DNA of 64,000 nucleotides from Blastocladiella emersonii ATCC 22665 (GCA_025594325.1 JANHCV010000015.1:310001-374000); one strand, 5' to 3'. Positions 2,149 to 36,290 are shown, numbered from the stretch's first letter. A program made the numbers and translations. Notes: generated by a model not told the origin, from the sequence alone.

Positions 2149-4197
2149 TTACACCTGTACATCCTCCTCATCCGGATCCGCACCACCCGCCTCCGCCGCG
2201 GCAGCCACCACGAGATCCTCGCGCCGCACGCCGAGCGCCAGCACGCCCGCGACGGCCCAGCACACGGCGCCCGCCGCGTACACGGCGCCGTCCCACTGCC
2301 CGACCGTGGCGCTGTAGATGGCCGTGAAGGCAATCGGGCCCACGATGTTGGCCAGCGAGTTGGCGGCCGACAGGATCCCGAGCAGCAGGCCGACGTGTTG
2401 CCGCGGGACCGTCTGGGTGGCGAGCGAGCGTTGCATTGGCATGGCCAGGATGCCGGCGGCGTCGAGCGGGCTCGCTACAGGTTGGTGAGGTTAGGGAGGG
2501 ATGTGGGTGAGGGTGGGAAGGGGAGCGGGGCGTACCAGCGAGGAACATCCACCCCTGCGTCGCGACCGCGAACAGGACGAACGTGACGGCGTACGCGGCG
2601 AACCCGAACACCATGACGCGGCGCTCGAGCGTGCCGTCCGAGCTCGCTGTCGCCCCCGCCGTCGTTCCGCTCGGCTTCGGTGCCTCGAGGAGCGGCTGCG
2701 TCTCACCGTCCACCTCGCCCTCGTCCACCACCGTCTGCGGCTCCGCAGCAGCCGGCGCAGCAACGAGGTGCCGCTGGCGGTACGCGATGGGCAGGAGCAC
2801 GGCGATCGCGATCACCTTCCACAGGAAGCTGAGCGACTGGAACACGCCGTCCTGCTCGGCGGTCCACCCGTACCGGCGGTACGTGTAGGGGACAAAGGCG
2901 ACCATGTGCGCCATGATCCCGGCGTTCGACAGGAACGTCGTGGCCAGGACCACCATGCGGGTCCGGTTCCATGGCCGGTACAGGTCGTGGAACGAGCCCG
3001 TCGTGATGGCGCTCGGGTGGTGGTGATGGGTTGGTGCGGATTTGCCGCCGTCAACGAGGACCTGCGCGAGCACGAGCGTGACGCCGAACAGCGCGGCGGA
3101 CGCCAGGAACACGACGACGGGGTCGCCCGGGACCAGGCGCACGACGAGCGACATGAGCGCCGGGCCGACCGTCAGGCCCGACAGCATCGCGCCCTCGGTC
3201 AGCGTAAAGAAGTAGGTGCGTTTGCTCGCCGGGATCAGCTCGGACGTGAGCGCGAAGAAGGCTGGAACGTCGTGGACCAGTTAGCGCACAGACGCGGGGT
3301 GCAGATCATCGAGACCCACGCGTACCCATGAGGAAACTCGGGAACCCGCCAGACCAGCCGACGGCGAAATAGCCGATGACGAGGTAGGTGCTCGGCAGGT
3401 TGAATCGGGCGATCAGGACGAGGCACAGGATGCTGATGATCTCGCCGACGATGGGCAGCATGAGGAACGGTTTGCGGCCTTGAATTCGGGTGAGTCGCGG
3501 GGGCAACGCGGCGCGTAAGCAAGAAACGTACCGATGCGCGGGTTGTCGGACAGCCGGCCGTACAGCGACGTGACGAGGATGGTCGGGATCGTCGAGCACA
3601 GCGAGAGCGCGGTGCTGACCTGCGTGATCTGGCCCTGCACTACGGGGACTCACAAAGTCAGTCAACCGCGTTCAACCCTCGCACTTACTCCTTGAGCGTA
3701 CCGTCGGGCTGCTTGCAATACGCCATCGGCGGCTCCGCGCCATCGCCCGCGACCTTGCCCGCGGGCGTCGCGGCGTAGTGCTCGCGGCAGATGAGGCGGA
3801 GGACAAATTGCGACTGCGGGGCCATAAGCATCGCAAACGCCGCGGCAAGGAAGAAGGGGACGGCCAGGTTCCAGTACACGCGCGACAGCCGCGCGCGTTC
3901 GCCGTCGTTGGGTGCGGCGGCGGTGGGATCACGGTCCATCACAGCAGCGTCGCGGGAGGGGGAACGGGGTATCGCCGACGACGATGCGGGTGGGAGCGGT
4001 GGGATGGGGAGGGTATCGTCGCCCTCTTCATCGTCGTCGTGCAACAAGCCGTGGTGCGAGCCCGCGCCGAGCGAGGCGGCGAGGCTGTACGGCGATGGCG
4101 GCGTGCGTGTTGTTGTTGGGACGGCAGCGGCTGTTGCATCGCTCGCGGCGGGCAGCGACGGCGGTTGTAGGTCGGATGCATTCATTGTCGGTTCCAT
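2149..4197 (-). CDS. MFS transporter (SLC46/tetracycline-resistance-like), multi-exon
   Basis: Many hydrophobic helices across exons; motif YGRLSD..GRKPFLMLP; C-terminal SLATQTVPRQHVGLLLGILS. Confidence 0.85.
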
Positions 4198-8400: not shown

Positions 8401-11400
8401 AGCGAGCTCACGTCCGTCGCCTCGTCGCCGCAGATCCCCGCGCCTATCGCATCCAGCGTGCTCACGTCCGCCGCACCGTCGCCCGTCATCGAGTCGCGCC
8501 CGACCGCGGATGTCGTGGACCCCGCGCACCCGCCCGTCGCGGGGTCGGTGATCCGCGCCGCGCAGTCGTCCCCGCTCGTCGCTCCGCCCTCTCCCGCGGC
8601 GGCGGTTGTTCACTCGCCGCAACGGCCGGCTGAGGATGTGATTGCGGTGCCCGTTTCGCCCGTCGTCGAGGTTCCGGCGGTAGCCCTCGCTCCCGTTCCT
8701 GCGCCCGTTCCCGAGGCCACGCTGGCGCCGGTGCGCGCCCCGCTGCCGCTCGCTGAGGTCCCGGTGCCCGCTACACCCGTCGCCGCCGCCGCACCCGAAC
8801 CCGAGGAGGTCGCACCCGCGCCTCAGCCAGCCCCCGAGACCGCGACCTCGACCTCGGCGACCGTGCCCATCTTCGTCCCGCTGCCCGAGATCCCGCCACC
8901 GCCACCCTTGGCTTCACACCCCGCGACGACGACGGCGCTCCCCTCCACCGCAGCCACCTCGTCGCCCGCTGTCCCGGGGGTCCGCAAGACGGGGCCGCGG
9001 ATCACGTTCCGCGGGCTCGACCTCGCGCCTCCGCCGAAACCCGCACCGGCGGCGGTTCAAGCGCCGGCCCTCCCGCCGCCGCCCGCTCTCCCCGCCGTCC
9101 GCGTCTCGCCCGAGCGCCCGCTCGATGCCCCGCAGCCTGCGCCCGTCGCCGACCGCTTCACCTTGCGCACGTCGTCGTCGCCGATTCCGTTCGAGCTCCT
9201 CGCGCGCCCCGCGGCCCCCGAGACCGCTGCACCGCCGCTTATCTCGCCGACGCGGCTTACGGTCGTCCTCGCTCCGCAGCCCGGCCCGCCGCCGCCGCCC
9301 ACGCACCAGCCGGCGCTCGCGGTGTCCGAGCCGGTCGCGTCCGCGCTCCCTGTCGCTGCGCCGCCATCGCGGCCGGTCCGTGCACAGCTGCCGCTCGGCT
9401 CGGCCCCGGTTCCTGCGCCCGCCGCCGCACCCGCCGCGCCCGCGCCTGCCGCCGAGCCAGAACCCGCGGCCGCGTCGTCGCGCGCCGCGCTCGTCGCTGC
9501 GGCCAAGTTCCGCAAACCGCCCGGCGCACGCGTCCGCGCGTTCCCTGGCGCCGCCGCCGCCGCGAAACCCATCCCTGCGGAACCGCGCCCGCTCGCAACG
9601 GCGCCGCTCGCCGCGATCTCGTCGCCTCCGCGCGCCCGCGCGCCCGGTCCCGGGCCGGCCGCGGACGACCCCGAGGCCGTCAAGACGGTGATTGTGGTGG
9701 CGTCCGCGACGCACGCCGACCAGCTGGCGGCGGTCGACGACCTGATCGCCGCGGCCACGCTGTTCAAGCTCGCTACCGCGCCGCCGCCGCCGTCCGCGTC
9801 TGCCGCGGCGCCAGTCGGGTTTTATACCGGGTGGGAGGTCCCGCTGCCGAACCGCGTGCTTGACGGGGCGCCGATTGTCGATTGGTTTGCGGGGGATGGT
9901 GAAGAGGAGGAGATGGATGAGGACGAGGATGGGGTCAAGAGTCCGCTGCTCCCGTCGCTCGCGGGCGAGGTGGAGGTCGGCGAGGAGGAAGAGGAGGACG
10001 AGGACGAGGGACCCATCGACGAGCCGACGCCGTCCCCGGTCCTCGCGCCCGCGCCCGCGTCGCGCCGCCGCCGCCGGCTCCCGCACAATGACTCGGCGCT
10101 CGAGCTCATGGACATCGACATGGACTTGGGCCGCGCCGCCTCGTCGCCCGAGCCCGAGATCGCTGCGCCGCCGCCGGCCCGCAAGCCCAAGGGCATCCGC
10201 CGCGCGACCCCGCGCGCACCCGCACCCGCCCCTCCCCCTCCTCCGCCTGCGCCGACCGCGACACGCACGAAATCCTCGCGCAAGCGCGCGCGCTCGCCGA
10301 CGCCGCCACCGAGCGACCCTGAGCCCGAGCCGACACCGGACCCCGAACCCGCGCGCCGCACGAAGAAGGCCCGCACCACGAAATCCGCCCCCGCACCGCC
10401 CTCTCCCCCGCCCCCGCCGCCCCCGGCCCCAGCCCCCGTCGTCCGCCGCACGCGCCGCTCCGTCGACGCCGCCGCGGTCCCGGCGGTCGCCGAGGCCGCC
10501 GCGAAAGCCACCGCGCGCGCGGCCGCGAAGCCGAAGTCGAAGGCGGCCAAGGCCGCTGCCCGTGCTGCTGCTAAGGCCGCTGCGGCGGAGGCGGCGGCTG
10601 CGGCGGCTGAAGCTGAGGCTGCGGAAGCGGCTGCGGAAGCGAAAGCTGCCACCAAGGCCGAGGCCCGCGCGCGTAAGGCGTCGTCGCGTAAGCGTCGCGC
10701 GGCGGTCGAGGAGGAGCAGGTGGTCGAGGAGGAGGAGGCGGTCGAGGAGCCCGCAGCGACCGGTAAGGCCGCGCGCAAGTCGGCGCGAAAGGCGAAACTC
10801 GCCGCGCCCGCGCCAAAGTCGGTCGCTGTTGCCCGCAAGTCGAAGAAGGCGGCGGCTGCGGCTGCTGCTGCTGCCGAGGCTGCGGCGAAGGCGGCTCCGC
10901 CGCCGCGTGCGCGAGGTGGGCGCAGCGGGCGGGTGGCTAAGCGCCGCGCGAGCCCGACGCCGGAGCCCGAGGAGGCCGACGAGGAGGAGGAAGCAGACGA
11001 GGCCGAAGAGGAGGCCGAGGAGGAAGCCGAGGAGGAGGTCGAGCAGGAGGAACAGACGCCGGTGCCCGAGGACCCCGAGGACGAGCAGGACGGCGAGCAG
11101 ACGCCCGTCCCCGCCACCGACGACGAAGCCGAGGCCGACGAGCGCACGCCGGTTCCCATGGACTTCGAGGACCAGTTCGAGGTCCCTGCCGTCGAGATGC
11201 CCGACGAGAACCTCATCAACGAGGATACGCGCAGCGCAACCCGCGAGCCGAGCTCGGCCCCGAGCGCGCCCGAGGACTCGGACGACGAGGACTTTGCGCC
11301 CGACGGCGTGTCGTCGTCCACCCGCACCAAGTCGTCGTCCCGCTCCGCGGCGCGCGCGCTGTCGACCGCCGACACGCCCAGTGCGGCGAAACCCGTAGCG

Positions 11401-13436
11401 CGGCGCCGCACGAGCAAGAAGGCGAAGGCCGCTGCCGCCGCTGCCGCTGCCGCTGCCGCGGCGACCGCGTCATCCTCGCTCGGGTCCGCGGCGTCGGCGC
11501 TCAAGATGGTCGCTGCCGCCGTCGAGGCCGAGCTGGCGCCCACGCCGTTCGACGCGTACAACGACATGCCGCTTGACGACGAGCCCGGGTCTGGGCTCAA
11601 CGGCGACGAGGAGCCGGGTACCGCGGCGGGCTCGTCGCGCCAGCGCGTGTCGTTCGACGACGAGACGCCGAGCGGTCGCAGCAGCCGACTCGCCGGGCTC
11701 GCCTCGCCCGAGGCAGGGTCCGCCGCGGCGCGGCTCGCGTCGTTCGTGTCGACGGCCGCGTCCAAGCCGGCGGCGCTGCCGCCCATCACGTACGCCGCCC
11801 GCCCGAGCTCCAGCGCAAGCTCCAGTGCGAGCGCGGCCCTGCTCGCGGCGCCCGCGCCCGCGGTCCGCTCGCTGACGCCGCCCACGCCGCAGCCCTCTCC
11901 GCCCCCATCGCCGCCTCAGCAGCAGCAGGACGAGGACCCGCAGCAGGAGCAGCCGCAGGACCAGGACCAGTCGCAGCAGGACCAGCCCAACTTCCCGCAG
12001 CCCGTGATCCCGCGCAAGGACCGCGCGTGCTTCAACTGCAACTCGAAGGAGTCAACGACGTGGCGGCGCAGCCAGCTGTTCCCGGGCCCGCACTTCCTGT
12101 GCAACCCGTGCGGGCTGTACGAGCGGATGCACGGGGCCAGCCGGTCCATCGACCCGGCGGGGCAGGCCGAGGTGCGCGTGACGCGGCGCGAGCGCAAGAC
12201 GCTCAAATACACGTGCGGCAACTGCGGGACCACCGACACGCCGGCGTGGCGACGCGGACCGTCGGGCGAGCCGCTGTGCAACGTACGTTTTCGGTCGATC
12301 GATGCTTGAGCCGCGAAGCGGGGATTGACCTTTGTCGGAATCGATTGTAGGCGTGTGGGCTGTTCCACCGGCACCACTCGGCGGCGCGGCCGCACGACAA
12401 GAAGACCGACAACGCGCTGCCGCTGTCGATGCTGCAGCGACTGCCGTCGGGCCAGGTGGTCAGCGTCCCGCTCCCCGCCGACCCGCAGGAGGCCAGAGAC
12501 TTTCTCGCGACGCAGCAGCAGCAGTTCCAGTCGACGCACCACCACCACCACCCGTTCCACTACCTGCCGCCGCACCTCGCGTACGCGCACGGCATGCACA
12601 CGCACGCGCACGCCCACGCCCACGCGAACGCCCACGCGAGCGCGTACGCGCAGGGGCACCGCCACCATCACCACCACTATCCGAACGTGTACCCGCTGCC
12701 GCCGCACGTGCACCCGCACCTGCCGTATTCGCACGCGCAGCGCGCGTACCCGCAGTCGTACCAGCAGCAGCAGCAGCAGCACGACATGGCGGCCGCGGCG
12801 GCGGCAGCAGCAGCGGCCGCGTCGGCCGCGTCGTATCCCGGCATCGCGCAGCAGCACCACCAGCAGCAGCAGCAGCATCCGTTCCTCCCGGCCCCGCCCG
12901 TCGCCGCGGCGGCGTACCACCCCCACCACCGGTACCCGCACCCGCAGCAGCAGCAGCCGGCGTACGCGCCGTACCCGCCGCCGGTCGTCGCGAGCCATCA
13001 CTCGGCCACGGACCTGCACGCGGGCCAGCACGCGCACCAGCACCAGCACCATCAGCAGCAGCCGAGTGCCGCGTCGCATCAGCGCCGTCGCCGTGGGAGC
13101 TCGGCCCGTCCGGCATCGGCCGCGCCAGCGCTCGGCGGCGGCGGCGGCGGCAGCGGAGCGACCTCGTCGTCTTCCGCGCTGCTCCCGCCGCTCTCGAGCC
13201 ACCCGCCACCGCTCCCGACGCTCGCGCAGTTCCAGCAGCAGCGCGACCAGTACCACCAGCAGCAGAACCAGCAGCAGCGGCAGGGCTCGCGCGAGGCGTC
13301 TGCGCCGCGGCCGCGGCGCGCGTCGGTCTCTGAGATCGCGGCGACGGCCGCGGCCGAGTCGATGCAACAGCAGCAGCCCAGCAACCAGTCGAACGGCGGC
13401 GATGGCGCAAACGATGAGATGGATTGGCTAGCGTGA
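5454..13436 (+). CDS. Very large (~2,500 aa) low-complexity transcription factor with an AT-hook and two GATA zinc fingers; 5' exon structure uncertain
   Basis: The 2107-aa frame has KRKRGRPRKHP, CFNC-x20-CNPC and CGNC-x17-CN|AC. Intron 12283-12350 restores the second finger and joins in frame to the Gln/His-rich exon ending at 13436. Likely start MGKAPLS at 5454, with introns near 5830-5880 and before 6061. Confidence 0.8.
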
Positions 13437-18333: not shown

Positions 18334-18355
18334 GATAAATATCGGCCGTTCCCCC
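18334..18355 (+). promoter_or_regulatory. Conserved TATA-like core promoter of peptide gene 1
   Basis: GATAAATATCGGCCgttCCCCC begins 92 nt upstream of ATG 18426. The same motif occurs at the same spacing before all five paralogs. Confidence 0.75.
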
Positions 18356-18425: not shown

Positions 18426-18741
18426 ATGCAGTTCTCCAAGATCCTCTTCGCCGTCGCCGTCGTCCTCGGCTGCGCCGCCTCGGGCGTGACTGCCGCTCCT
18501 GCCGAGTCCAAGGCCGCTGCCGCTGCTCCCGCCTCCATCGGTGCGTGGCCATCAACTTGCTCTCGCTCGCGCCTTCGAGCTGAATACTTACTTACCCTAC
18601 CCTTTTCCCCATCCAACAGGCATCCAGGGCTGTGCCTACCAGTGCTACCGCGCCTGTTCGTACCGCTGCGGCGGTAACTCGTCGTGCCTCGACGACTGCG
18701 CCCGCGACTGCTCCGACTGCGACGACGGCCGCCGCCCGTAA
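18426..18741 (+). CDS. Secreted 8-Cys peptide, paralog 1 (exons 18426-18540, 18620-18741)
   Basis: Spliced product MQFSKILFAVAVVLGCAASGVTAAPAESKAAAAAPASIGIQGCAYQCYRACSYRCGGNSSCLDDCARDCSDCDDGRRP*. Phase-1 GT-AG intron. Confidence 0.9.
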
Positions 18742-21151
18742 GGTTTTGACGCTCGATCGCCGACTCGCGTGCGCGGGGCCGGTCGTGGCCCGTCGTGGCC
18801 CGTCGTGTCCACGCAACAGATTGATGTCAAGACGGTGGATTGCTGAGAAATAGAAATGTATCGAAAGCTTTTGTTCAATCTGGATGTGTTCCGTTCCTGA
18901 AGGTGAGCTTGACACGCGAAGTTCAAAACACGTGCCCGCCGTGGCAGTCGCTGATCCTTTATTTTGCAGCGAGTCTCCTTTCATATCACGCAATTTATTA
19001 GACTCAAGGCTTTGAGAGATAATCTTGAGCTTCATGGCGTGCAATAGACCTCTTGCACGGGTCCGGCCCAGCGAGTCACGACGACAACGGTGCACTGCAG
19101 ACCCTCGACCGTGGCTTCTAATCGCTCGTCGTCACGGTTTTAGTTGCGGCCCAAACAAAGCACTAGGTGTGTGTGCTGCGCACACACTTGGGTCTCAGCT
19201 GTAGCTTTAGTCTGCCGTGTCGATGATGAGAACAGCAGCGCAGGTACAACGCGCGCGGTAGGCACGCGTCCATGGCCAACTACCCCACGGCCATGAGCAT
19301 CGTGGCCGCGGAAAATCACGTTATTCGGTTGAGCAAGCACTCGAAGCCGTGGCTCATGGTCGGAACTGAGGCTGGACTCAAACATGTCGCGCTGGCTGCC
19401 CGAAAGTCCGTACCAGTTAAGTTAACTGAGTTAACAAAGTTGAGGAGCGGGAGAAGCCCTCGAGGCCAAGGTCGCGGCCGCCCACGCCGCCTTGTTCCTG
19501 AGCGCGGATCGTCCGCAGCCTTGCTGGAGAGAACGTTCGCCCGAGCACCTGCTCATGGTCCCGGTCCATGAGAAGCAGTCTAAGAGCCAGTCGACCTCAC
19601 GCACCTGTTCCCGCCGTGTGCTTTCTGTGTTGCGGTTCGTAAGCTTGCGATCCACCTCTCCGAACTGGTACGAGGCTGCATCGGCGGCACCCTTTGCAAA
19701 TGAAGAAGCCACTAACGAGAAGGCCAAGGCCAGGTCCGCGGCAGCGACGGTCGCTGGGTTGCTGGTCGGCGCGTGACGGATCAAGCGCGGTGTGTTGCAG
19801 TGGGCGGGAAGGTTAATAAAAACTTGGATAATTTGGACGACGTCGTGAAGCGCCGCAGTGTATGGGCGTCACCCTGACTCGCGTTCTGGGCGGTGGCTAT
19901 TGAGCGGAACGCAACGAGCGTCGCCGTGAGGATCTTTCGCACGCGGCCGACGTCTGACCAGCGATCAGGATCGAGCCCAAGGGGATCTTGACGCAGGGCC
20001 AGTCCTTGAAGTCGATCACGTCAACGATGCGCATGTGCGCCTCGCCCGTAACCTCGTCAACGACGCGTTGGAGCGAGAAAGAATTGTGTCGCGCAGGTCG
20101 ACCCGCACGACGCGGTACGCGGTGTCGAGCACGATTCGCGGCTGGCTACTTTCAGTATGATGCAGTGGGCGCGTACACGCCTGACGCTGCTGAGCCTTCT
20201 TCTTTATCGTCGGGCTAGGCTCGGTTAGCTGGCGTGATCCAGTCGTGGTCGTGGATCCTCGGAGTCGTTCTCGCCGCCTGAAACCTATGTTTCGGGCTCG
20301 CGTCGCACCGTTCTCGCCTTGCTGCGTGCATGTTGAGCTTTCTCCAGTCAATGTGTACGTCACGTCATCGCTACCCCTCAGTAATCGCTATGTAGACGCT
20401 ACCCATCGCCAACAATGAAATCATTTACTTGCGAACGATGACCCAAATCCATGACCTTGTACTATCTCGGTAACTAGGCGATTCACGAACTCTAGACTTT
20501 TTTGCGCCTAAAGAGAAAGACAAAGGCGGATCGAAGCGCGTAAGTTCGGGCGGCCGGATTGAAGACAGTTAAGGGAACCAGCGGAAATAGAGGACCTATA
20601 TTTTGCGCCGGGTGTTTCAAAATGATTTTTGCGCGACCTTGATGCTGCGCTGATTGTTGTTCGAAAGCGGTCGTAACGGTTGGCGACGGAGCTGCAGGCG
20701 GGGTCGGAGAGCGGTGGCTCAGCGGGTGGAGCAGCGGGTGGCGCAGCAGTGGGAGACAGCACCGACCGACCGCTCCACTGTCACTCCAGGTTGACGCACA
20801 TTTGAAGACTTTCAAGTAGGTCGCCTCGTCAAATAAGCAGTGTCAGAATTTTTATTACACAGAGCTGAGGCCAATGCGGGGAGTCGGGGACTTGGAATGA
20901 GAGCTAGACCAAGATAGTTGGGGTCGGGGGCCAGAACTGCAGACGAAGCTTGGTTCACGTGCAGGTAGATGTCTCTGATAGGTTCCAATTGCTCAAACAG
21001 AAACTCAGCTTCGCTAAGGGCCCGTTTGGTTCCGGGGTGAATCAGGTGGATCAATCGATTTTACACGGTCCGGTGTTCACCCAGCTGAAACGTGGCATTT
21101 TCACCCCGTCGCGTTCATCGCGGCGTTTGGGTCGACCCCCGGATGAGCTGA

Positions 21152-21616
21152 ATGGAACCCTCGTCGCTGAATTGCCCGTCTGCTCGCCCCCGAAACCTTC
21201 AGGCTGTGCTTCCCGGCCTATATAAACGCTGTTTTCCTTCGTGGGGCAGCTCGACCACCACCGGCGAGTACTCGCACCTCGAGCAGGACGGCAAGGAGTC
21301 TGGTGACGTGGAAGGTGTCGATGGTCAAGACGACGCGGCCCCCGCCAGCAAGCGCAGCCGCACTTCGGACAGCAGCTCGCGTCGCCTCTCGGACTCGGAA
21401 TTCCTCATGGGCATCAAGGAGGTGTTCCAGAGCGTCGCGACCGCCGACTCCAAGCCCGTCTTGACCGCCGCACTTGAATGGGTCCAGGACGCGTACAACG
21501 ACAATGAAGAGTACCAGATCGACGTCGCCACCCGCCTGACCGAGGATCAAGCGCTTCGCGTCATGGCCGTGTCCGAATCGAAGCGCAAGCGCATCCTCGA
21601 GATTTTCATTCAGTAG
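21152..21616 (+). CDS. Harbinger accessory ORF, apparently the C-terminal part of a Myb/SANT-like partner protein, copy 1
   Basis: Convergent with the transposase, as in PIF/Harbinger elements. SSTTTGEYS resembles the end of Myb/SANT-like domains; acidic linker and helical tail follow. No intact N-terminal domain is visible. Confidence 0.5.
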   Translation: MEPSSLNCPSARPRNLQAVLPGLYKRCFPSWGSSTTTGEYSHLEQDGKESGDVEGVDGQDDAAPASKRSRTSDSSSRRLSDSEFLMGIKEVFQSVATADSKPVLTAALEWVQDAYNDNEEYQIDVATRLTEDQALRVMAVSESKRKRILEIFIQ

Positions 21617-21929
21617 CTCACTCGCACATGTCCCCCTCCCCTCGCGTTGCTTCCTGGCCTTGTTCTCGCCCATTTGTGTCCAATACATCTGGCTTTGTGT
21701 CCATCGTATCTTCAATCGTTACCCTTCGCTCGAAAATGACGCGACTCGTTGAGAAACGCGTGGTTCTCAAAGTGTCTCGCACGTCACGTGATTGATCGAC
21801 GCGTCTCCACCGATGCGTTCTGACCTCAGCGACGCGTCAAATCATCTGGAATCGCTTATCTAACGTTATAGTACTTGACAAATCAGTATATTACAGCATG
21901 CATGCGGGTACAACAATTATTTCGCGCCT

Positions 21930-23247
21930 TCAAAGACGGGTCCCACGAGCGGCCATGACGCGCCTGTACTCGGTCCAAAGAACATTTGCGACGCGGTTCC
22001 GAAGCGAGATACCGCGCTGACGAGCTCCGTCCAGCGAGGCCTCGAGGACAGCGGCCTCGTCGTCCTCCTCGTTCTCGTCGTCCAGGGGCTCGCGCCCACG
22101 CACTGGCGCCTCACGCGCCGCGTCCCGCGCGCGCCGGAGCTCCGTCTCGGCGTCGCGAAAGAAGGCGTCGCCGCCTTGGTTCCACTTGTTGATCATGTTG
22201 TGCAGCGTGCAGAGCGCGTACACAAGCTTGACTTGAGTCTTGATTGGGTAGGCCGCGCCAATCGAGAGGACGCGGAAACGCTTCTTGAGCACGCCAAAGA
22301 TATGCTCAATGGAGTTGCGGAGCGACGCGTGACGCAGATTGAAAAGCTCTTCGCGGTTCTTAACTCTACGTACGTTGGTGAAGCAGATGAGATGGCGCCA
22401 ACGTGATGGTCATGGCAGTGAGAACGTACCCATCCTTGCCGCGGGCAAACTCGCGAAGATGATAGCGGGTACCGCTGAAGGGCACGATGATGGACGTGCG
22501 GTTTGCGTAGCCGCCGTCGGCGAGGTAGAAGCGGCCGGCGGGGATCTTGAACCCACGGGCGAAGGCGTCCGAGAGCACGCGCGAGTCATGCGCCTTGCCC
22601 TCCCACCCTGCGAGAACGTAGGTGAAGTTCAAGTCAAAGTCGCAGGCAGCGAGGACATTTGAGTATATGGTCCCCTTGCGGTTTCGGAACGAGTCGTGAA
22701 GCTTAGTGGGCACAACAAACGGGATGTGCGTTCCGTCAAGCGCGCCGACCGCGTTCTGGAACGGAGCGTATTTCGGGTCGTGGGCGATGCGCTCATGCAC
22801 GGGCGTAGAATCGGACGGCTGGACAATGAACTCGGGCATCAGGCGGTACAGAGCGTCGAGCACTTGCTTCAGAACCCTGGACGCGGTCTCGCCAGAGATT
22901 TGGAACCGCTCCCTGAGGTTGCGGTTGGTGCTGCCCTCGCCGGCCATGACAAGAAAAACCATGAAGCGCGCCTCGACGGACAGCTCGCGGCCGTCGGCGA
23001 GAAGGCCACGGTCGCGGAACAGGCGGCAGATGGCCTTGAAGGTCTCGCGGGGCATACGGGCGATTTCCGAAAAACGCGTTTCGCTGTTGCACGTCAGCAG
23101 CTCTTAAACCCACGACTCGCCGGAAAGCGTGGACGTGCGGATAGGCTCCCACGAGCGGCGCTCGTTGCGAGCAGCGAGACGTCGCAGGAGAGCGAGGGCG
23201 GCTGTGAGCATTAGGCCGCGCAGCTTGCGGTTGTATCCCTTGCCCAT
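21930..23247 (-). pseudogene. Harbinger transposase, copy 1, with an in-frame TAA at codon 48
   Basis: GALDGTHI, WEGKAHDSRVL, YLADGGY and, after one intron, LFNLRHASLRNSIEHIFGVLKKRF. TAA at 23104-23106 lies between ATG 23247 and in-frame ATG 23055. Confidence 0.88.
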
Positions 23248-23784
23248 GTTGTTTGAGGGCTCGAGAACACGATGCGTGAGGTTAGGTGTTGATTCGTTGC
23301 AATAAGTGCGGCTGCAAAGAGGTGGGAAAGATTTTATTGCGGGGGGGCGTTCATCCAGCGGGGCGTTTGGTTCGCACGGCCGCTGAGATGAACGGGGGTG
23401 AGGTGAAACGTGGCAACTGTTTCAGCTGATCCACCTGATCTGAACCAAACGGGCCCTAAAGCTACAGCTGAGAACTAAGGTCTCTGTACCGAACCTTGCA
23501 AGAAGACAATCCAATCTCTCAGCAACACGTAAGTCACTTGCAGAGTGGAACGGAAAGCCGACCTCGCTGTTCCGAGCCGCTGTGGCGCAACGCGTCCATG
23601 GCGACAAGGCTTGACGACGCGTTTCTCCTCGACCTCCCTCTAATCACACTCCGATCTCACCATCAACGAGAAATATCGGATCAACCAAAATTTGTCTTTG
23701 TATATCCTTCAAAAATCTCTTGGGGTGGGCAACACGACAGCAGCCGGGGTGCGCGGGCGAAGCCTGGTGGCACTTGGCGGGTGT

Positions 23785-24087
23785 TTACGGGCGGGTGGTC
23801 CCGTGGTCGCAGTCCGAGCAGTCGCGAGCGCAGTCGTCCTCGCACTGGGAGTCGCCATGGCAGCGGGAAATGCACGACATGTAGCAACGATAGCCACAGC
23901 CGCCCTGGATGGCTGTTTGATGGAGAGCGCGCTCGAAATGTCAGGGATTCGCTCATCAACAGTGTCGGAGCTCGAGACACGTACTGGCAGCGGGGACAGC
24001 CGACTTCTCAGCGGGAGCGGCCGACACGCCCGAGGCGGCGAAGCCGAGGACGACGGCGACGGCGAGGAGAACCTTGGAGACGCGCAT
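23785..24087 (-). CDS. Secreted 8-Cys peptide, paralog 2 (exons 24087-23985, 23912-23785)
   Basis: Spliced product MRVSKVLLAVAVVLGFAASGVSAAPAEKSAVPAATIQGGCGYRCYMSCISRCHGDSQCEDDCARDCSDCDHGTTRP*. Confidence 0.9.
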
Positions 24088-24150
24088 GTTGAAGATGTGG
24101 AAGGGTGGAGGGGCTCGAGGATGCTTGCTCTGCTGGTCCAGCTGATGAGG

Positions 24151-24174
24151 CGGGGGGACCGACCGCTATTTATC
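24151..24174 (-). promoter_or_regulatory. Conserved core promoter of peptide gene 2
   Basis: Reverse complement reads GATAAATAGCGGTCggtCCCCCCG, 87 nt upstream of the ATG. Confidence 0.75.
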
Positions 24175-25118
24175 GGCTTCGACTTAACAGCTGAGCGGGT
24201 CGGCTCGCGCGTGGTTACGCGTCAGAGGAGCGGGCAAGGCCTGAGCGGTCGCTCGCCTCGAAAGTCGGACCGGGATCTGCACACCAGCGGTCAACCCGCG
24301 CCTCGATCAAGGACGCGGCGGGGGCCCAAACCCTGCGGTAAGATTCCAGGTTCGGCGCTGAGCTCCTGAGCTGTACTCTGTTCACATGCGACCTTGCACG
24401 CGCGCACGTGCGAAAAAGCGGCCTTGTGCACGTCGGACGCGACGCACGTTGCAACGGTGGAGTCCTCGAGTCGGCGCCCAGCGAGGTCGAAATCCAAGTT
24501 GTGAGACAATTTCATCACGGTATCATTGCTCTGTCGCACCCAAGTTCGACGCGTTTGGTGACGGTCACCTGCTCGGCGGCGCCAAATGGAGGGCTGCGCC
24601 ACCGATGCGACGAACCTCCATCCGTGGTAGGGCGCTCCTGATCTGGGTGCCGCCCACCGGTCACCCGATGCACCGAAATGCACCCCAAATGCCCCCACCC
24701 CGGTCGCAGGACCGATGGACGCGCGTAGTTGTGCTCGCTCGCACGCGTTTTCGTGCGACCAACTTGAAATTGAGGTCGATGTTCGTCGCGTGCCCGCGGT
24801 CACAGGTTCACCCCTCGGTCGCCCGAATGGGCGCTTTGTGAACCACAACGCGTTTTTTGCTGGTTTAAGCGACACGGCGGCGGCTCAACCGTCGACTTTT
24901 CGAGGTCACACGGGCTGCTGGGCGTCACGCGCGCGCGTTCAACGCAGGAATGAGGCCCCAGCGGCTGTGAACCGCAGTTCACAAGCGCTCGATTCGGCTT
25001 CAGTTCTCGAGTCGGCGCTCCGCTGCGCGTGCACGCGCGCAAAGTGCGTGAAGCCGGTGGCAGAGTTTGGAGAGCAAAGTTCTTGGCGACCTTTCGCGCG
25101 AGGGCGTAGGTCCGAGGC

Positions 25119-25140
25119 GATAAATAGCGGCCAGCCCCCC
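25119..25140 (+). promoter_or_regulatory. Conserved core promoter of peptide gene 3
   Basis: GATAAATAGCGGCCagCCCCCC, 93 nt upstream of ATG 25212. Confidence 0.75.
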
Positions 25141-25211
25141 GCTCCTTCGACTGGACCAGCAGAGCAAGCTTTCTCGAGTCTTCCTCCCCACCCCCACAAC
25201 TCACCCTCACC

Positions 25212-25616
25212 ATGAAGTTCTCCAAGGTCCTCCTCGCTGTCGCCGTCGTCCTCGGCTTCGCCGCCTCCGGCGTGTCGGCCGCCCCCGCTGAGAAGTCGAT
25301 CCTTCCCTCGGCTAGCGGTGCGTGGTCATAAAGCTGACCTTTTCTATGCCCCGGCAGCTTACCTTGTTCCCCTTTCTACCTTCGTTCTAGCCGGCATCCA
25401 GGGCTGCTCCTACCAGTACGTAATCGCGCGTGAACGCGAGCTCGCCATGATGCCCTTGCGCATGGACGAGCCTGGACGACGATTCTGGGCGACGTCTAAC
25501 CGTAATTTCACACCAGGTGCTACATTCGTTGCATTCGAGGCTGCGGGAACGACTCGAGCTGCAAGGACGACTGCAACTACATGTGCATGGATTGCGACGA
25601 CGGCCACCGCCCTTGA
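25212..25616 (+). CDS. Secreted 8-Cys peptide, paralog 3 (exons 25212-25317, 25391-25415, 25517-25616)
   Basis: Spliced product MKFSKVLLAVAVVLGFAASGVSAAPAEKSILPSASAGIQGCSYQCYIRCIRGCGNDSSCKDDCNYMCMDCDDGHRP*. The second intron splits the Gln codon (CA|G). Confidence 0.9.
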
Positions 25617-26959
25617 ATTCGACCTGCCCGGCTCGCTCTGGTGTCGCTCGACAGCGTCGCCCACCGTGTCCACAACCCGCCAAGGTGTCGTGGTGACGAT
25701 TTTTTTTGAACGCATACATATACACGAATCTTTTGTAAATGGATTTCACTCGAGAGAGTAAAAACGACAGTTGGCGAGCGGCGATCGAAAGCGCGTTGGC
25801 CAAAACACGTGATCCTGATCGCGACGCATGGAGTGGTCGGTGAAGCGTTGTGACGATCACAGCTCGACGCTACAGTCTCAATGCTTGCTAGTTCGATGTG
25901 TGTGAGTTGCAGCAAATCAACTTACAGTGACTCTTTACTCCAACTTTCACAGCCAAAAAATATCGTTTGTGAGCGAGTTTCGGGGTCAAATTGCGGGTGA
26001 GTGGTAACCGCTTTTCTACCCGTGATCATGAAAAATTCCGATTTATGTGCTCGTCATTACAGATGCTTTAGCCGTCATCGTGGCTCTTTGCGGTTTGTCG
26101 CGGCGTTGCGCAGAAGAAGGGGAGCATCCTTGCGAGGACTGCTCGTTTGGTAGGCTGCAAGCGGAGGCCCCGCTTTGCTACAAACCGCCCAACTTTGATT
26201 ATGAGGGTGTGCCGCTGACGTCAAACAGGCAATGAAAGCCGCCATTTGGGTTTGTCAGCGTCAGGACTTTAATTGTGGCGTACCATCACCCTCGCCAACA
26301 CCTGCTTGTCGCAGTAGAGCTTGTTGGCCTCGACGTTCGTGGTTGTCGCAGCGATGATGGCAGTGCACCTTGCCGCTCTCCTTGATCACTTCCACCACAT
26401 GAGCGTGGATCGGTGGCAGGTGCTCGGCAGAATGATACACGCATTGCTGAGGCAAGCGTACACCTAGTCAAGGAGGTGTATTCCTGCCTTTGGCCCTGAA
26501 CCAGGGCTGGGTGAGGTGAGAGAGGTTGACAAAGCAGGGAGCGGCGCTGCGGGAGCGCGATGAGCCAGCGAGACGAATGCGGGCGTAAACAGGCAAGATC
26601 AGGTGGACGATCACCACGATCGCCACCACATGAACGACGCGTAACAGTTGGTCATAGCGCCTGATCTCAAGCCCGTATCACAACTACAATCAATCAGCTT
26701 GCCCTCCGCGGGCATTCATGAATTCCTTCAACGAATTCCATCAATGCGCTCCTTCAGCCTCAGATCTATCCATTTTTCTCTCTCTATTGCGACGCTCTCA
26801 AAAGGGTGCTCGTTCATCCAAGAGGAGGTTTTATGATCAAAAGTAAGCTCTCATCTCAAACTCGTGGCACTCAAAACAAAATCCGCTTGGAACGTGGGAG
26901 ATCTTGGCGACATCGACCGCGTCACGCGTCGCAGGTCGAGTTGGTGAAACGCTTCGCGC

Positions 26960-27253
26960 TTAGGGGAAGGGCGGGCGGTCGCAGTCTGAGCAGCCGCGGA
27001 TGCAGTCGTTCTCACACTGGCGGTCGCCGTGGCAGCTGTACTCGCACGCATGGTAGCAAGCGAAGCCGCAGCTCTGCACGCCTATGTGATCAGGAATGGG
27101 GATGGGTGAGATGTTGACTCAGAAGAAACCGGTGTGAACACGCTATCACGAACCAACGTTGGCAGCCTTGGACTCGGCGGGGGCAGCCGAGATGCCCGAG
27201 GCGGCAAAGCCAAGGACGACAGCGACGGCGAAGAGGGCCTTGATGAGCTTCAT
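26960..27253 (-). CDS. Secreted 8-Cys peptide, paralog 4 (exons 27253-27154, 27081-26960)
   Basis: Spliced product MKLIKALFAVAVVLGFAASGISAAPAESKAANVGVQSCGFACYHACEYSCHGDRQCENDCIRGCSDCDRPPFP*. Confidence 0.9.
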
Positions 27254-27321
27254 GTTGTTGGCGGTTTGAAGGTCGGGGAGGAGGCTGGGGTTGCTGGCTC
27301 TGCTGAATCGGCTTTGGACCG

Positions 27322-27344
27322 CGGGGGGCTGGCCGCTATCTATC
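27322..27344 (-). promoter_or_regulatory. Conserved core promoter of peptide gene 4
   Basis: Reverse complement reads GATAGATAGCGGCCagCCCCCCG, 91 nt upstream of the ATG. Confidence 0.72.
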
Positions 27345-28608
27345 GCCTCAAGCTCACTCGCCCTCTTCCTTCAGCGTGAAGCCCATGGTACGCTTCGCGT
27401 TGGAGAGCGAAACGGTCGGCAACTTGCACACGCGTGCGTGCGTCGCTGGCGGCGGCTACTTCCCTGGGAGCCGAGACCAGATCAGGAACTTGCAGACGCT
27501 CGGGCACACCGTCATCATATTCGTATGTATTGCGGATCCCAGTCGGGGGACGTGCGTGGGCGAGTGAATTGGTCGCATGATGCACGTACGCGAGTGCGCA
27601 CGCGAGCGGACGAGTTGAGCCGACGTCGAAGCGACACCTTGAATCCTGAACGAGGACCGCGTGCGGATGCGCGCGCGTTGGTCGGGATCGAATCAAGAAA
27701 GTGAGCCCAGATTCGCACACGGATGCCAGAACAGGTGGTGGTGCATGGTGGCCACGCAGGCCACCGCTCTGTTTACTGACATTGCGCACGCGACTCCCAG
27801 GGCCCGAGCTCGCGATTCTTGGGCGCGTGACCAGGCGACGCGCTTTCTTCTCTCGGCCAGGTTGTCAAGCGGGGCATCACTGGGAGCCAACTGCCAGGGA
27901 GTGTGTAAATGCGGGAGGCGACTGACGCCTACGACCTGGTCCGGTCAGCGACGCCTGGCTGCGCGATTCGAACGAATGGCGCGTTGGTGGCTTGAGCAAA
28001 CACTTTTATGGACGCGTTCTGTTATCACGTGTTTTATGTCACGCGCATGCTGCGGCTCGTCTTTGGTGCCTTGCCTTGCCTTGCCTTCACAACCACGCCG
28101 CTGTGTTCAATCAACAAAGGTTGCTTCTTGCGTCGCGCGGTATACAGACCCTGTTGCTCCAACGAATGAGCCCAGCTCGGGCCTGGCGATGCCGAGCATG
28201 GTAAAACCTGAGAGAGCGAGGTAACTAAAGCGGCCGTCTTGTTATTGGCATTAAACTACTCACACTGCTCGTTGCTCACGGCGGGAATCTCGTGAGGTTG
28301 GTGACTGAAGCGACCACCCACTGTTGCCAGCCAAGCACACACTTTCATTGACAAGGGAGATGCAAGCTTGTGCAAACGTTTTTCAAAGCTTTCTCCTTCA
28401 CGCGTTAATAGGTCGCCAAGTCATGAAGAAAGCTAGACCCTCTCTATTCGAAACACGGTTCCATTGTGGAGCTCAACCGACTAGAAACCAATGAATCTTT
28501 TAAGCAAAACTGTCTGTGTATCAATCAATCATCATCGATCTTCTTACTCTATCCCATCATCTCCTCCTTGTCAACAGTTCCGCTTGGCGCCGTCAGGTCC
28601 GAGGCCAT

Positions 28609-29547
28609 TCAGGGGCGGCGGATCGGGTCGTCGCAGCCCATGCAGTCGAGGTTGCACTGGTCCTTGCACTTGTTGTCGTTGCCGCAGCGCTTCGAGCAAG
28701 CGCGGTAGCACCTGGGAGCGAGAAGAAGTGGTTAGACGGTGATCGACGAGGAGCGGGGATCGCGCGGCGCGGCCGTCGCCAAAGAATCGAGTTTCCTCGA
28801 GACCTTCTTGGCGCGGTGCAACGCGACACGACGCGGCCACGGTAGATCGAACGTCGAGATAGAAACGTACTGGTACGAACAGCCCTTGATGGAGGCGGAC
28901 TCGGTGTTCAGGCTGGCGAACTCGCGGCGGATCGGGTCGTCGCAGCCCATGCAGTCCAGGTTGCACTGGTCCTTGCACTTGTTGTCGTTGCCGCAACGCT
29001 TGGAGCACGAGCGGTAGCACCTGGGTAGAAGAGAGGGAGGTTAGGGCGTGATTGATGAGGTGGAATCCGCGATCGCGCGCGGCTCCGCCGTGAAGGATCC
29101 CAGTTTCCTCGGTCCACCACCAGGGGCAAGGCCGGGTTCGCGCAGCGCGGCGACAGCGTAAAATTTTGAGCGAGAAAAAAAAAACGTACTGGTACGAGCA
29201 GCCCTGGATCGAGACGGCCTCGGCGTTGAGGGCGGCGAACTCGCGGCGGATCGGGTCGTCACAGCCCATGCAGTCCAGGTTGCACTGGTCCTTGCACTTG
29301 TTGTCGTTGCCGCAGCGCTTCGAGCAGCGGATGTAGCACTGGTACGAGCAGCCCTCGGTGCCTGGAGCGAGAAAAGGCGAAGAAAACCGTCAGGATCGCG
29401 ACCAGGAAGCCGTGGGAGGTCGTGGCGGGCAGACGACGCACCAGCGGCGATGGCGGCGGCCTTGTTCTCAGCGGGGCCAGCGTTGACGCCCGAGGCGGCG
29501 AAGCCGAGGACAACGGCGACGGCGAGGATGACGTTGGAGACGCGCAT
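28609..29547 (-). CDS. Three-core 8-Cys peptide precursor, paralog 5, 176 aa (exons 29547-29442, 29361-29190, 29020-28871, 28711-28609)
   Basis: Signal/pro region MRVSNVILAVAVVLGFAASGVNAGPAENKAAAIAAG, then three near-identical cores GCSYQCY(IR/RS/RA)CSKRCGNDNKCKDQCNLDCMGCDDPIRR separated by EFAALNAEAVSIQ and EFASLNTESASIK, ending RRP*. All three introns are GT-AG and keep the frame. Confidence 0.92.
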
Positions 29548-29618: not shown

Positions 29619-29641
29619 CGGGGGACCGGCCGCTATTTATC
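29619..29641 (-). promoter_or_regulatory. Conserved core promoter of peptide gene 5
   Basis: Reverse complement reads GATAAATAGCGGCCggtCCCCCG, 94 nt upstream of the ATG. Confidence 0.75.
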
Positions 29642-33680: not shown

Positions 33681-36290
33681 ATGAAACTACCCGCAACGCC
33701 GCCGTCAAGCGGCCGTGGCCGCCGCGGCCGCGCCGCCGCAAGGCCACCGCTCCTCGCCACGGTCGCGCTGCTCCTCGTCCTCGCCCTCGCCTCGCTCTCC
33801 GCCGTGACCGCGCAGCAGCAGCCGCCGGCCGCCAAGTCGCTGGACCCGAGCTTCTCGGTTCCCGCGATGCAGTGGCAGCGGCTGAACCCGCCGGCCGGCA
33901 CGCCGATGCCGGGCGGGCGGCGCGACGCCGTCTTCGTGTACGACCACACGACCAAGAAGATTGTGCTGTTCGGCGGGCGCACGCGCGACAACGTGCCGCA
34001 GGACGACACGTGGCTGCTCGACATTGTGACGGGGACGTGGCAGCTCGTCGAGAACAACCCGAGCCGCCCGCTGCGCCCGCCGGCCCGGTACGCGGCCGTC
34101 GCGGGCACCGATATCCCGACCACGTCCGACCGCCAGGGCGTCGTCATTGCCACGGGCATGGGGCCGAACGGCCAGATGCTCAACGACGCGTGGGGGTTCC
34201 ACATGAACCTGCTGTCGTGGAACATCATCCCCGCCGCCGGGGACGTGCCGCCCGGCATGTACAACGCGGCCGGTGGGGTGTCGCCCGAGGAGCACACGAT
34301 CGCGCCGTTCCCGACCACCCTGTACGCGGCGCTCGGCACTACCAAGACCGGCGGCGTCACCGACACCTACGCCCTGACCATCACGGGCGGGACGACCGGG
34401 TTCAACTACTCGAACGTCAAGGCCGAGTGGAAGAAGGTCGACGGCGGCACCGCGCGCCCGCCCGCCCGCTCGGACCTCGGCGGGCTCGTCCTCAGCGGCG
34501 AGAAGCTGCTCGCCTTCGGCGGGTGTACGGCCTCGGCGTGCCCCGCCGCCGACGGCTGGGTCGGGACCCCCTCCAACGTCAAGTTCTCGTCGGGCGGCGT
34601 GTGGAAGCAGGTCGACAGCTGCCCGGCCCCGCGCCGCGGCGCCTCGCTCGCGATCCGCCCGGACCTCAACGCCAACAACTACCAGAAGCAGGCCGTCATG
34701 TTCGGCGGCGCCGGCGACCGCGACGCGCCCGGACTTGTCTCCTATTTCGACGGCGACTCCAACTCGTGGGTCAACGTGCTCCCCGACGCGGTCGGCGGCA
34801 GCTACCCGGCGCAGCGCGACGGCGCGTCCATGGCCGCGCACCACGAGAACGGCGCCGTCGTCATGTTCGGCGGCCAGCTCGCCGACGGGTCCGTGTCCAA
34901 CGAGGTGTGGCTGCTCCAGTTCAACGCCCGCGACAACAAGAACACATACGTCCCGTGCTTTGTCAGCCAGGACTCGACCCAGCGCACCGTCCACGGGATC
35001 CTCATGGCCGCGGCCACCGCGCTGCTCACCGCCGCGACGTTCGTCTCGCGCTACTGCAAGCCCGCGCCCGCACCTGGCGCCCGCCCTGCGGGAGCGCGGG
35101 GTGCCGCCAAAAAGCAGCCGCCCGGCGGCGCGCGCAACGCACCCCCTGTCGCCGGTGCCGCTCGCCCGCGCGGCGGCGCGCCCGGCAGCGGCGTGTCCAC
35201 GGCGGGCCCGCAGAACGTGGGCGCGCTCGAGACTCCCGGCCGGCAGGTGTGGCTGTGGGCGCACGGCCTGCTAGCCTTCTTCGGCGTCGCGTGCGCGGGC
35301 GCCGGGTTCTACTTCGCGTACTCTGCGCGCGGCGGGACCGCCGGCCACTTCACCTCGCCGCACGCGGTCGTCGGGATCGTCGTGCTCGGGCTGCTCGCGC
35401 TGCAGGCGCTCTCGGGGCTCGTCCAGCCCGCGAATTTCCCGTCGCTCATGGCCGCCGAGCGCGAGGCGGCCGCGCGGCGTGGGACCGGGGTTGCGGGTGG
35501 TGCAGGGCAGGGCGGGGCGGGCGCGCGGAATACCGCGCTTAATAACGCGCTGCGCCAGATGAACGTGAACCCGAACCAGTTCTCGGGCGGTGCGGGTGGT
35601 CCCGCGTCCGCAGCTGCCGCCGGCGGAGCCGGGAACGGCGCCAAGTCGGCGCGGCGCAGCGGCCCCGGGATCCGCGGGTTCAGCTACGTGCAGTTCTGGT
35701 CGCGCGTGCACCAGACGCTCGGGCTCGGCACGCTGTATCTCATGTACCTGAACGTGTTCCTCGGGCTCGACAAGCTGGGCGCGTCGTGGGTGTGGTTCGT
35801 GGTCGTGGCCGGCGTCCTCGGCCTGCTCGCGTGCGCCTTCATCGTGCTCACGCTCATGGGCAAACCGAACCGCCGCACCTGGTCCGTGCGCATGGCCCGC
35901 AAGCTGCTGCGCAAGAAAGACGGCGTCGCGACGGGCTCCGCGTTGCCCGGACCCGGTGGGGTGGGCGGCGGCGCGTCGTCGGTCGCCCTCCGTGGCCCGA
36001 TCGATGATGACGACGAGGACGACGAGGACGACGACGAGTACGACAACGAGTACCGCTCCGGCGGTGGCGGCGGCGGCGGGCCCGGCGGGATGCACCGCCA
36101 CCACCCCGGCGGCAACGCGAATAACCCGACGGGCACGTTCCAGCGGTCGAACCGCAACGGCGGCGCCCTGGGCCACCACGGCAGCGACGGGTCCCTCGGC
36201 CGCCACGACGACGAGGGCGGCGACATGTACGACCGCGAGGTCGTGATCATGACGATCCCGAAGCCCAAGCTGCGCATCGTCAACTCGTAG
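33681..36290 (+). CDS. Signal peptide + Kelch beta-propeller + cytochrome b561-like membrane domain (869 aa, intronless)
   Basis: Kelch-like repeats (IVLFGG..DTW, LLAFGG, VMFGG..NEVW). Membrane helices carry four His at b561-like positions (VHGILM, AHGLLA, SPHAVVG, RVHQTLG). Confidence 0.75.
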   Translation: MKLPATPPSSGRGRRGRAAARPPLLATVALLLVLALASLSAVTAQQQPPAAKSLDPSFSVPAMQWQRLNPPAGTPMPGGRRDAVFVYDHTTKKIVLFGGRTRDNVPQDDTWLLDIVTGTWQLVENNPSRPLRPPARYAAVAGTDIPTTSDRQGVVIATGMGPNGQMLNDAWGFHMNLLSWNIIPAAGDVPPGMYNAAGGVSPEEHTIAPFPTTLYAALGTTKTGGVTDTYALTITGGTTGFNYSNVKAEWKKVDGGTARPPARSDLGGLVLSGEKLLAFGGCTASACPAADGWVGTPSNVKFSSGGVWKQVDSCPAPRRGASLAIRPDLNANNYQKQAVMFGGAGDRDAPGLVSYFDGDSNSWVNVLPDAVGGSYPAQRDGASMAAHHENGAVVMFGGQLADGSVSNEVWLLQFNARDNKNTYVPCFVSQDSTQRTVHGILMAAATALLTAATFVSRYCKPAPAPGARPAGARGAAKKQPPGGARNAPPVAGAARPRGGAPGSGVSTAGPQNVGALETPGRQVWLWAHGLLAFFGVACAGAGFYFAYSARGGTAGHFTSPHAVVGIVVLGLLALQALSGLVQPANFPSLMAAEREAAARRGTGVAGGAGQGGAGARNTALNNALRQMNVNPNQFSGGAGGPASAAAAGGAGNGAKSARRSGPGIRGFSYVQFWSRVHQTLGLGTLYLMYLNVFLGLDKLGASWVWFVVVAGVLGLLACAFIVLTLMGKPNRRTWSVRMARKLLRKKDGVATGSALPGPGGVGGGASSVALRGPIDDDDEDDEDDDEYDNEYRSGGGGGGGPGGMHRHHPGGNANNPTGTFQRSNRNGGALGHHGSDGSLGRHDDEGGDMYDREVVIMTIPKPKLRIVNS

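Follow-up and report, generated by a model that had tools for sequence, protein, structure and literature searches.

We found a cluster of five short, intron-split genes for cysteine-rich peptides in a 64,000-nt stretch of the genome of Blastocladiella emersonii ATCC 22665 (GCA_025594325.1 JANHCV010000015.1:310001-374000), which at its full length we call the window. Our analysis covered positions 18426-29547 on both strands. We hold with moderate confidence that these are real, unannotated genes of one subfamily (subfamily A) encoding secreted hairpin peptides with four disulfides, whose likeliest role is in defence or competition.

All five gene models (g1 to g5) contain only canonical GT..AG introns and have open frames throughout, of 78, 76, 76, 73 and 176 codons, in DNA that is GC-rich and eukaryotic in character (56-77% GC). 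The first, g1, lies on the plus strand at 18426-18741: exon 1 (18426-18540) encodes the signal and pro-segment, a 79-nt phase-1 intron follows (18541-18619), and exon 2 (18620-18741) encodes the eight-cysteine core and the stop codon, giving a 78-aa product with a GC content at third codon positions (GC3) of 0.87 versus 0.54 GC in the intron. On the minus strand, g2 (24087-23785) joins exons 24087-23985 and 23912-23785 across a 72-nt phase-1 intron (23984-23913; product 76 aa, GC3 0.84), and g4 (27253-26960) joins 27253-27154 and 27081-26960 across an intron of the same length and phase (27153-27082; product 73 aa, GC3 0.85). The plus-strand gene g3 (25212-25616; 76 aa, GC3 0.86) has three exons, 25212-25317, 25391-25415 and 25517-25616, separated by a 73-nt phase-1 intron ahead of the core and a 101-nt intron past Cys1-S-Y-Q. 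The largest gene, g5 (29547-28609, minus strand; GC3 0.95), has exons 29547-29442, 29361-29190, 29020-28871 and 28711-28609 with introns of 80, 169 and 159 nt, and encodes a 176-aa polyprotein of three near-identical cores whose linkers read ...DDPIRR followed by EF(A/S)..SI(Q/K)G. The additional intron past Cys1-S-Y-Q of g3 recurs in the second and third cores of g5.

The five products share a common layout. Each begins with M-(K/R/Q)-x-S/I-K/N, then (L/F)AVAVVLG(F/C)AASG and a small-residue end (V/I)-x-A, which by eye looks like a textbook signal peptide. A short Ala/Pro-rich segment separates this from the intron and core, and in every gene a phase-1 intron of 72-80 nt falls 2-5 codons ahead of Cys1. 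The cores, seven in the five genes, follow the framework C-x3-C-x3-C-x3-C-x5-C-x3-C-x3-C-x2-C and end in Pro, with an invariant Tyr after Cys2 in the seven-core alignment. Matched from C2 to C8 against the window translated in all six frames, this framework occurred seven times, solely at the seven cores, versus not once in 100 block shuffles. The initial annotation of this DNA had proposed intron-split genes on both strands with seven identically spaced cores, a shared AVAVVLG(F/C)AASG signal, the Tyr after Cys2, the terminal Pro, and an intron between the prepro region and the core, and the spliced models and core alignment reproduce each of these. Two of its statements needed narrowing: the framework it called invariant is so within the cluster and varies elsewhere in the genome (C-x3-C endings, x4 loops, six cysteines), and the family, which it put at five genes, has at least 16 genome-wide.

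Several features of the sequences argue that the five are real, unannotated members of a multigene family. GC3 is 0.84-0.95 in the spliced coding sequence versus a GC content of 0.49-0.61 in the introns of the same genes. All 56 cysteine codons, every splice site and every frame are intact, with paralogue cores about 45% different at synonymous sites, and the repeat exons of g5 are 89-92% identical, its introns 58%. A tblastn search within the window found no relic copies.

Each gene is also preceded by a TATA-like element, ATARAKAKCGGYCR, which matched five times in the window versus zero expected, 86-93 nt from the ATG: at 18335-18348 (plus strand, 91 nt upstream of g1), 24160-24173 (minus, 86 nt, g2), 25120-25133 (plus, 92 nt, g3), 27330-27343 (minus, 90 nt, g4) and 29627-29640 (minus, 93 nt, g5). 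A TATA-like element lay 86-97 nt upstream of the ATG in all six genes tested. We rejected ATARAKAKCGGYCR as a family-specific signal. With the C-rich run that follows it, it has 16 copies genome-wide, most of them with an ATG about 90-125 nt downstream, and other copies precede ordinary genes (ferritin-like, argininosuccinate synthase-like and secreted subtilisin-type protease). This makes it a TATA-type core promoter in general use in this organism, and one that still marks the five peptide genes as transcription units.

The cluster belongs to a larger family. Genome searches with several members, combined with locus inspection, gave at least 16 genes and 18 cores in B. emersonii, a census made with protein queries that sets a minimum. 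Subfamily A, with a last spacing of x2, consists of the five window genes and is present at this locus only. The 11 genes of subfamily B have a last spacing of x3 (ending C-x3-C), usually a Trp after Cys1, and some x4 loops; five of them, all on the same strand, lie at C7:441303-448390, one near C7:490 kb, three on C2 and two on C18. One subfamily B member, at C7:441303-441590, has six cysteines arranged as CX3CX3C-x9-CX3CX3C. We also noted, at C7:487353-487460, a family-type signal-peptide exon with no recognisable cysteine core downstream, perhaps a copy in decay or a gene whose mature part differs.

Searching 1.84 billion representative proteins with a family profile returned two proteins, neither from the window. 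KAI9179183.1, a 77-aa hypothetical protein annotated in GenBank for B. emersonii ATCC 22665, is a member of subfamily B encoded exactly at C18:1583399-1583694, with a 62-nt phase-1 intron in the position seen in the window genes. ORZ37469.1 is a relative from Catenaria anguillulae PL171, whose annotated start seems to lie 19 codons too far upstream. C. anguillulae has at least three family genes, with precursors of two or three differing modules (2+2, 3+3 and 3+3-like cysteines) separated by KR; two of the genes stand divergently, about 2 kb apart, in MCFL01000012.1:111210-123694 (3510-3934 and 6001-6485 of that stretch). The window genes were absent from the protein libraries searched (5.8 billion proteins and 1.84 billion representatives), as the prediction that automated annotation would miss them implied, and no protein among the 5.8 billion shared three 5-residue words with the g1 core. 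Metagenomes searched with a g5 exon gave 396 pattern matches and no confirmed member. Within the searches run, the family was found only in Blastocladiomycota.

The tree built from the cores splits subfamily A and the Catenaria modules from subfamily B with support 100/97, and Catenaria queries matched only the window genes in the B. emersonii genome; the window subfamily therefore seems to predate the split between Blastocladiella and Catenaria, a dating that we put forward tentatively from an alignment of just 42 columns. A weak match to Catenaria module 1 at C5:403040 proved spurious, with no module at that locus.

AlphaFold2 predicts the core to be a helix-turn-helix, with the four cysteines of each half on one helix face and a conserved G-N/D-D at the turn. 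Both predictions used the family alignment as input. That of a window core has helices at residues 4-16 and 20-34 and a predicted local distance difference test score (pLDDT) of 79; that of a subfamily B core has helices at 3-17 and 21-34 and a pLDDT of 84, with all five models alike. The two helices always carry equal numbers of cysteines (4+4, 3+3 or 2+2) in every module of both genera, and in Catenaria module 2, aligned to subfamily A, C1 and C8 are both replaced and the inner C-HGDxK-C rung is kept. From this symmetry and from module 2 we infer a disulfide ladder, C1-C8, C2-C7, C3-C6 and C4-C5. For both models the top Foldseek matches were plant alpha-hairpinins, namely vicilin leader or buried peptides, nigellin, luffin P1 and BWI-2c (entries 7uv1, 7uv3, 9q1l, 2nb2, 6o3q and 2lqx), followed by a small TIM, Ole e 6, vanabin2 and neurotoxin B-IV.

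In the explanation that we favour, the signal peptide would direct the pre-pro-peptide into the endoplasmic reticulum (ER), with a probable cut after ...ASG(V/I)xA, and past the short Ala/Pro-rich segment the 36-42-residue core would fold oxidatively into two antiparallel helices joined by the G-N/D-D turn and closed by the four proposed disulfides. The three-copy polyprotein of g5 would probably be cut after RR by a kexin-type convertase, and the genome contains four kexin-type P-domain genes. The products would then be very stable, fast-evolving extracellular peptides that bind outside targets and serve the defence or competition of a water and soil saprotroph, perhaps as toxins, inhibitors or non-classical antimicrobials. 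If the favoured explanation holds, use of such stable, secreted binding peptides against other organisms is a serious possibility, though short of an even chance. Since the organism very probably lives freely as a saprotroph, a role as effectors is a poor fit. We also put forward, more speculatively, that the peptides form a new structural class of host-defence or toxin peptides, a regular four-rung cystine-ladder alpha-hairpin with two, three or four rungs in one family, which would constitute the first defensin-like, fast-diversifying arsenal of secreted peptides to be described in zoosporic (early-diverging) fungi and would have an origin independent of plant alpha-hairpinins, Ole e 6 and scorpion kappa-KTx toxins.

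The way the genes diverge bears on this explanation from both sides. Even synonymous sites are conserved in the signal region (proportion of synonymous differences, pS, 0.25, versus 0.45 in the core), and at non-cysteine core sites the pooled ratio of nonsynonymous to synonymous differences (pN/pS), which rests on about 17-20 synonymous sites per pair, is 1.0, with some pairs above 1 and the cysteines invariant. A conserved signal, a fast core and tandem clusters form a pattern familiar among interaction peptides such as defensins and conotoxins, and here the combination suggests fast-evolving extracellular binding peptides. A number of observations weigh against the favoured explanation, beginning with this small number of sites. 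A pN/pS near 1 also fits relaxed constraint, which it does not separate from positive selection. Family members range in net charge from -5 to +5. The window cores span -3 to +2 and are for the most part acidic, their first helix basic and their second acidic, which makes it unlikely that they simply attack membranes as cationic peptides do. The single-core genes have no dibasic site ahead of the core, and dibasic pairs occur within cores as well (S-K-R-C in g5, for example), so that the RR site is no proof of cleavage. The fold matches are all weak (Foldseek E-values of 2-9, VIA-align Z below 5), as would be expected of a hairpin of 40 residues. Finally, the disulfide connectivity and the mature ends are ones that we infer, the case for the genes is made from genomic sequence, and the public annotation that holds one family member was itself ab initio.

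Other explanations would assign the same genes different roles. The peptides might be self-directed, pheromone- or autoinducer-like signals acting through receptors on the organism's own zoospores or sporangia, an idea we consider unlikely but worth keeping in mind. The pheromones that ciliates release into water are small helical proteins rich in disulfides, and the majority of the cores here are not cationic. The g5 product, with a signal peptide ahead of three RR-separated repeats, fits the formal definition of Kex2-processed repeat proteins (KEPs; PMC6339444), as those of the four single-core genes do not, and the KEP class includes fungal alpha-pheromones. However, at least 16 divergent paralogues with pN/pS of about 1 at non-cysteine sites are many for a conserved ligand-receptor pair, the cluster neighbours scanned against Pfam include no receptor, transporter, processing gene or modifying enzyme, and Blastocladiomycota use sesquiterpene pheromones (PMC6339444). 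Improbable to a greater degree is that the family consists of protease inhibitors, or blockers of other enzymes or ion channels, built on a hairpin scaffold in the manner of BWI-2c-type hairpinins and kappa-KTx toxins. The structural and profile matches do include the trypsin inhibitor BWI-2c and kappa-hefutoxin/kappa-KTx 1.2, a pattern C-Y-R-x-C ... G-N-D ... C-K-x-x-C is held in common, and trypsin inhibition is among the activities of hairpinins (PMC10136942), but no Lys or Arg that could act as P1 is conserved in the loop G-N/D-D-x-x, and the profile matches (E-values of 0.1-0.2) place the cysteines one rung off the register of the ladder, which points to convergence.

With eight cysteines in about 38 residues, the cores could also be metal-binding or redox-active thiolates, like metallothioneins or vanabins, rather than disulfide-bonded structures. 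Vanabin2, a vanadium-binding, disulfide-rich helical protein, is among the weak fold matches, and there is a weak NCBIfam likeness to bacterial Cys-Xaa-Xaa-Xaa repeat peptides (21.5 bits versus a cut-off of 50). We give this little credence: a signal peptide for the ER implies folding along an oxidising route, strictly symmetric i,i+4 cysteines on two predicted helices fit pairing rather than clusters, and the cores have no CxC or CC motifs and few His residues. A structural or adhesive role in the cell wall, in the cyst coat or in the sporangial discharge plug would suit the strong TATA promoters, a type also found at abundant secreted proteins, and a family seen only in a lineage with special wall structures; set against these, the peptides are of very small size, with no repeats, Ser/Thr-rich regions, glycosylphosphatidylinositol signals or cross-linking motifs, and their inter-cysteine residues change fast, which makes such a role very improbable. 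We rate just as low the chance that the genes are non-functional, whether silent or decaying duplicates or chance open frames. They are known from their sequence and absent from public annotation, but the five genes and seven cores show no frame breaks, the cysteine codons are kept despite the synonymous divergence of the cores, splice sites and promoters are intact, there is a strong GC3 bias, conservation is far higher in exons than in introns, and there are relatives in another genus.

Secreted bioactive peptides of zoosporic fungi are little known, and within the literature searched no such peptides have been described in this lineage; a clustered, fast-evolving and nearly unannotated family in a laboratory model, with relatives in the nematode-associated Catenaria, is now testable. 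The set also illustrates how short peptide genes split by introns escape ab initio gene finding, even with a sister gene called. If the proposed structure is true, a 36-42-residue hairpin with four regular disulfides would offer peptide engineering a scaffold that is unusually rigid and stable and easy to synthesise, with natural two-, three- and four-rung variants on hand for comparison.

Other features of the window accompany the cluster. Between g1 and g2, inside the cluster, lies a Harbinger/PIF-type transposon at 20812-23643 with matches to DDE_Tnp_4 and HTH_Tnp_4; its transposase open reading frame (ORF) is at 22366-23055 on the minus strand, and the partner ORF at 21152-21616 has no Pfam match. 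On the plus strand, an ORF at 33681-36290 joins Kelch beta-propeller repeats with a cytochrome b561 domain, and a 2107-codon open frame at 5986-12309 has GATA zinc fingers solely near its C-terminus.

Comparison with known families returned no established home for the peptides. No Pfam or NCBIfam family scored over its cut-off, and the literature searched contains no description of this family or of a named fungal family with this framework, including the B. emersonii expressed sequence tag paper, which does not mention such peptides. A search of genomes and of Pfam/InterPro with the spliced cores had been suggested beforehand as a check, and the results agree with the earlier remark that the framework was not recognised from any named fungal family: neither Pfam, NCBIfam, the PDB sequences nor the literature gave an already described family over threshold. 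The other structural expectation, a helical hairpin, is matched by the two predicted models, whose best matches (alpha-hairpinins, Ole e 6 and kappa-KTx) are all weak. Feature and shape searches of the ESM Atlas returned generic or bacterial cysteine-rich clusters and nematode C_tripleX proteins, and nothing else. Against PDB sequences, a profile of the whole family matched Ole e 6 best (1ss3, E-value 0.0094), then kappa-KTx 1.2 and kappa-hefutoxin (E-values 0.1-0.2), and a smaller family profile matched OmTx1/2 and a 13-residue C-G-N-N-N-x-C-K-N-Q-C stretch of radish defensins. The match to this stretch of Rs-AFP1/2 has E-values of 0.0065-0.016 against PDB sequences, and the folds differ. At the level of residues, C-G-N-D-N-K-C-K-D-Q-C in window cores (for example 29300-29330, minus strand), which spans the loop and the beginning of helix 2, is closely similar to C-G-N-N-N-A-C-K-N-Q-C of Rs-AFP1/2. 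The profile alignments place the cysteines one rung out of register with the ladder, and we therefore read them as convergence, not homology.

The remaining profile matches fall well below their thresholds. DUF7772 (PF24977) matches the Catenaria proteins only, at 13-19 bits versus a threshold of 25, and nothing in the B. emersonii genome. One family protein scores 21.5 and 16.7 bits with TIGR04117 and TIGR04118, the Cys-Xaa-Xaa-Xaa repeat radical SAM targets, versus cut-offs of 50 and 35; those are bacterial families without signal-peptide logic. The nematode C_tripleX family (PF02363) gives 8.3 bits and an E-value of 4 with one member only (gathering threshold 22.9). C_tripleX proteins and the small TIM twin-CX3C proteins have the same CX3C periodicity and are among the structural matches, but the former are long repeat proteins and the latter mitochondrial, with two disulfides and no signal peptide. 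KEPs resemble g5 in its near-identical repeats separated by RR, as they do the Catenaria modules separated by KR; their peptides, however, are mostly short and linear, and here one of 16 genes is a repeat protein, with cleavage predicted only. Classical cationic antimicrobial peptides differ from the window cores, which are mostly acidic or neutral.

The scorpion CS-alpha/alpha toxins (kappa-hefutoxin 1, kappa-KTx 1.2 and OmTx1/2) are helical hairpins with facing CX3C motifs, and the kappa-KTx toxins share the local pattern already described; they differ in having two disulfides and 22-27 residues, in being venom potassium-channel blockers, and in an aligned cysteine position one rung off. Neurotoxin B-IV of Cerebratulus lacteus (1vib) is a helical hairpin with four irregularly spaced disulfides and thus a precedent for a four-disulfide hairpin toxin; it differs in its 55 residues and irregular cysteine spacing, and the match is very weak (E-value 9.5, TM score 0.28). 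Ole e 6, the olive pollen allergen (1ss3, PF09253), has the cysteine pattern CX3CX3C-x9-CX3CX3C, exactly that of the six-cysteine member at C7:441303, and 36% identity over 28 columns in Foldseek. It differs from the window cores in its three rungs, its long disordered tail and its origin in plant pollen, where its function is unknown; with PF09253 the best family member scores 10 bits (E-value 0.92, gathering threshold 27.7), and the likeness may be convergent.

The closest structural comparison is with the alpha-hairpinins (EcAMP1, Tk-AMP-X2, BWI-2c, Luffin P1 and the vicilin-buried or leader peptides, for example), which are defined by C1X3C2-Xn-C3X3C4 in fewer than 50 residues and are described as restricted to plants (PMC10136942). 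Like them, the B. emersonii peptides would be secreted helix-loop-helix proteins of fewer than 50 residues with facing CX3C motifs and multi-module precursors, the helix-loop-helix being that of the AlphaFold2 prediction. The four-cysteine motif is contained in the core as C3X3C4-x5-C5X3C6, with eight cysteines in all, twice the defining number. Alpha-hairpinins pair their cysteines outer to outer and inner to inner (C1-C4, C2-C3), the same nesting that we propose here. The two differ in that alpha-hairpinins have two disulfides and occur in plants, the peptides described here a predicted four rungs in a fungus, and no sequence homology to plant alpha-hairpinins was detected, the structural matches having E-values of 2-9. 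Taken on their predicted structure, the peptides would belong with the cystine-stabilised alpha-helical hairpins, to which they would add a regular four-rung version in a fungus.

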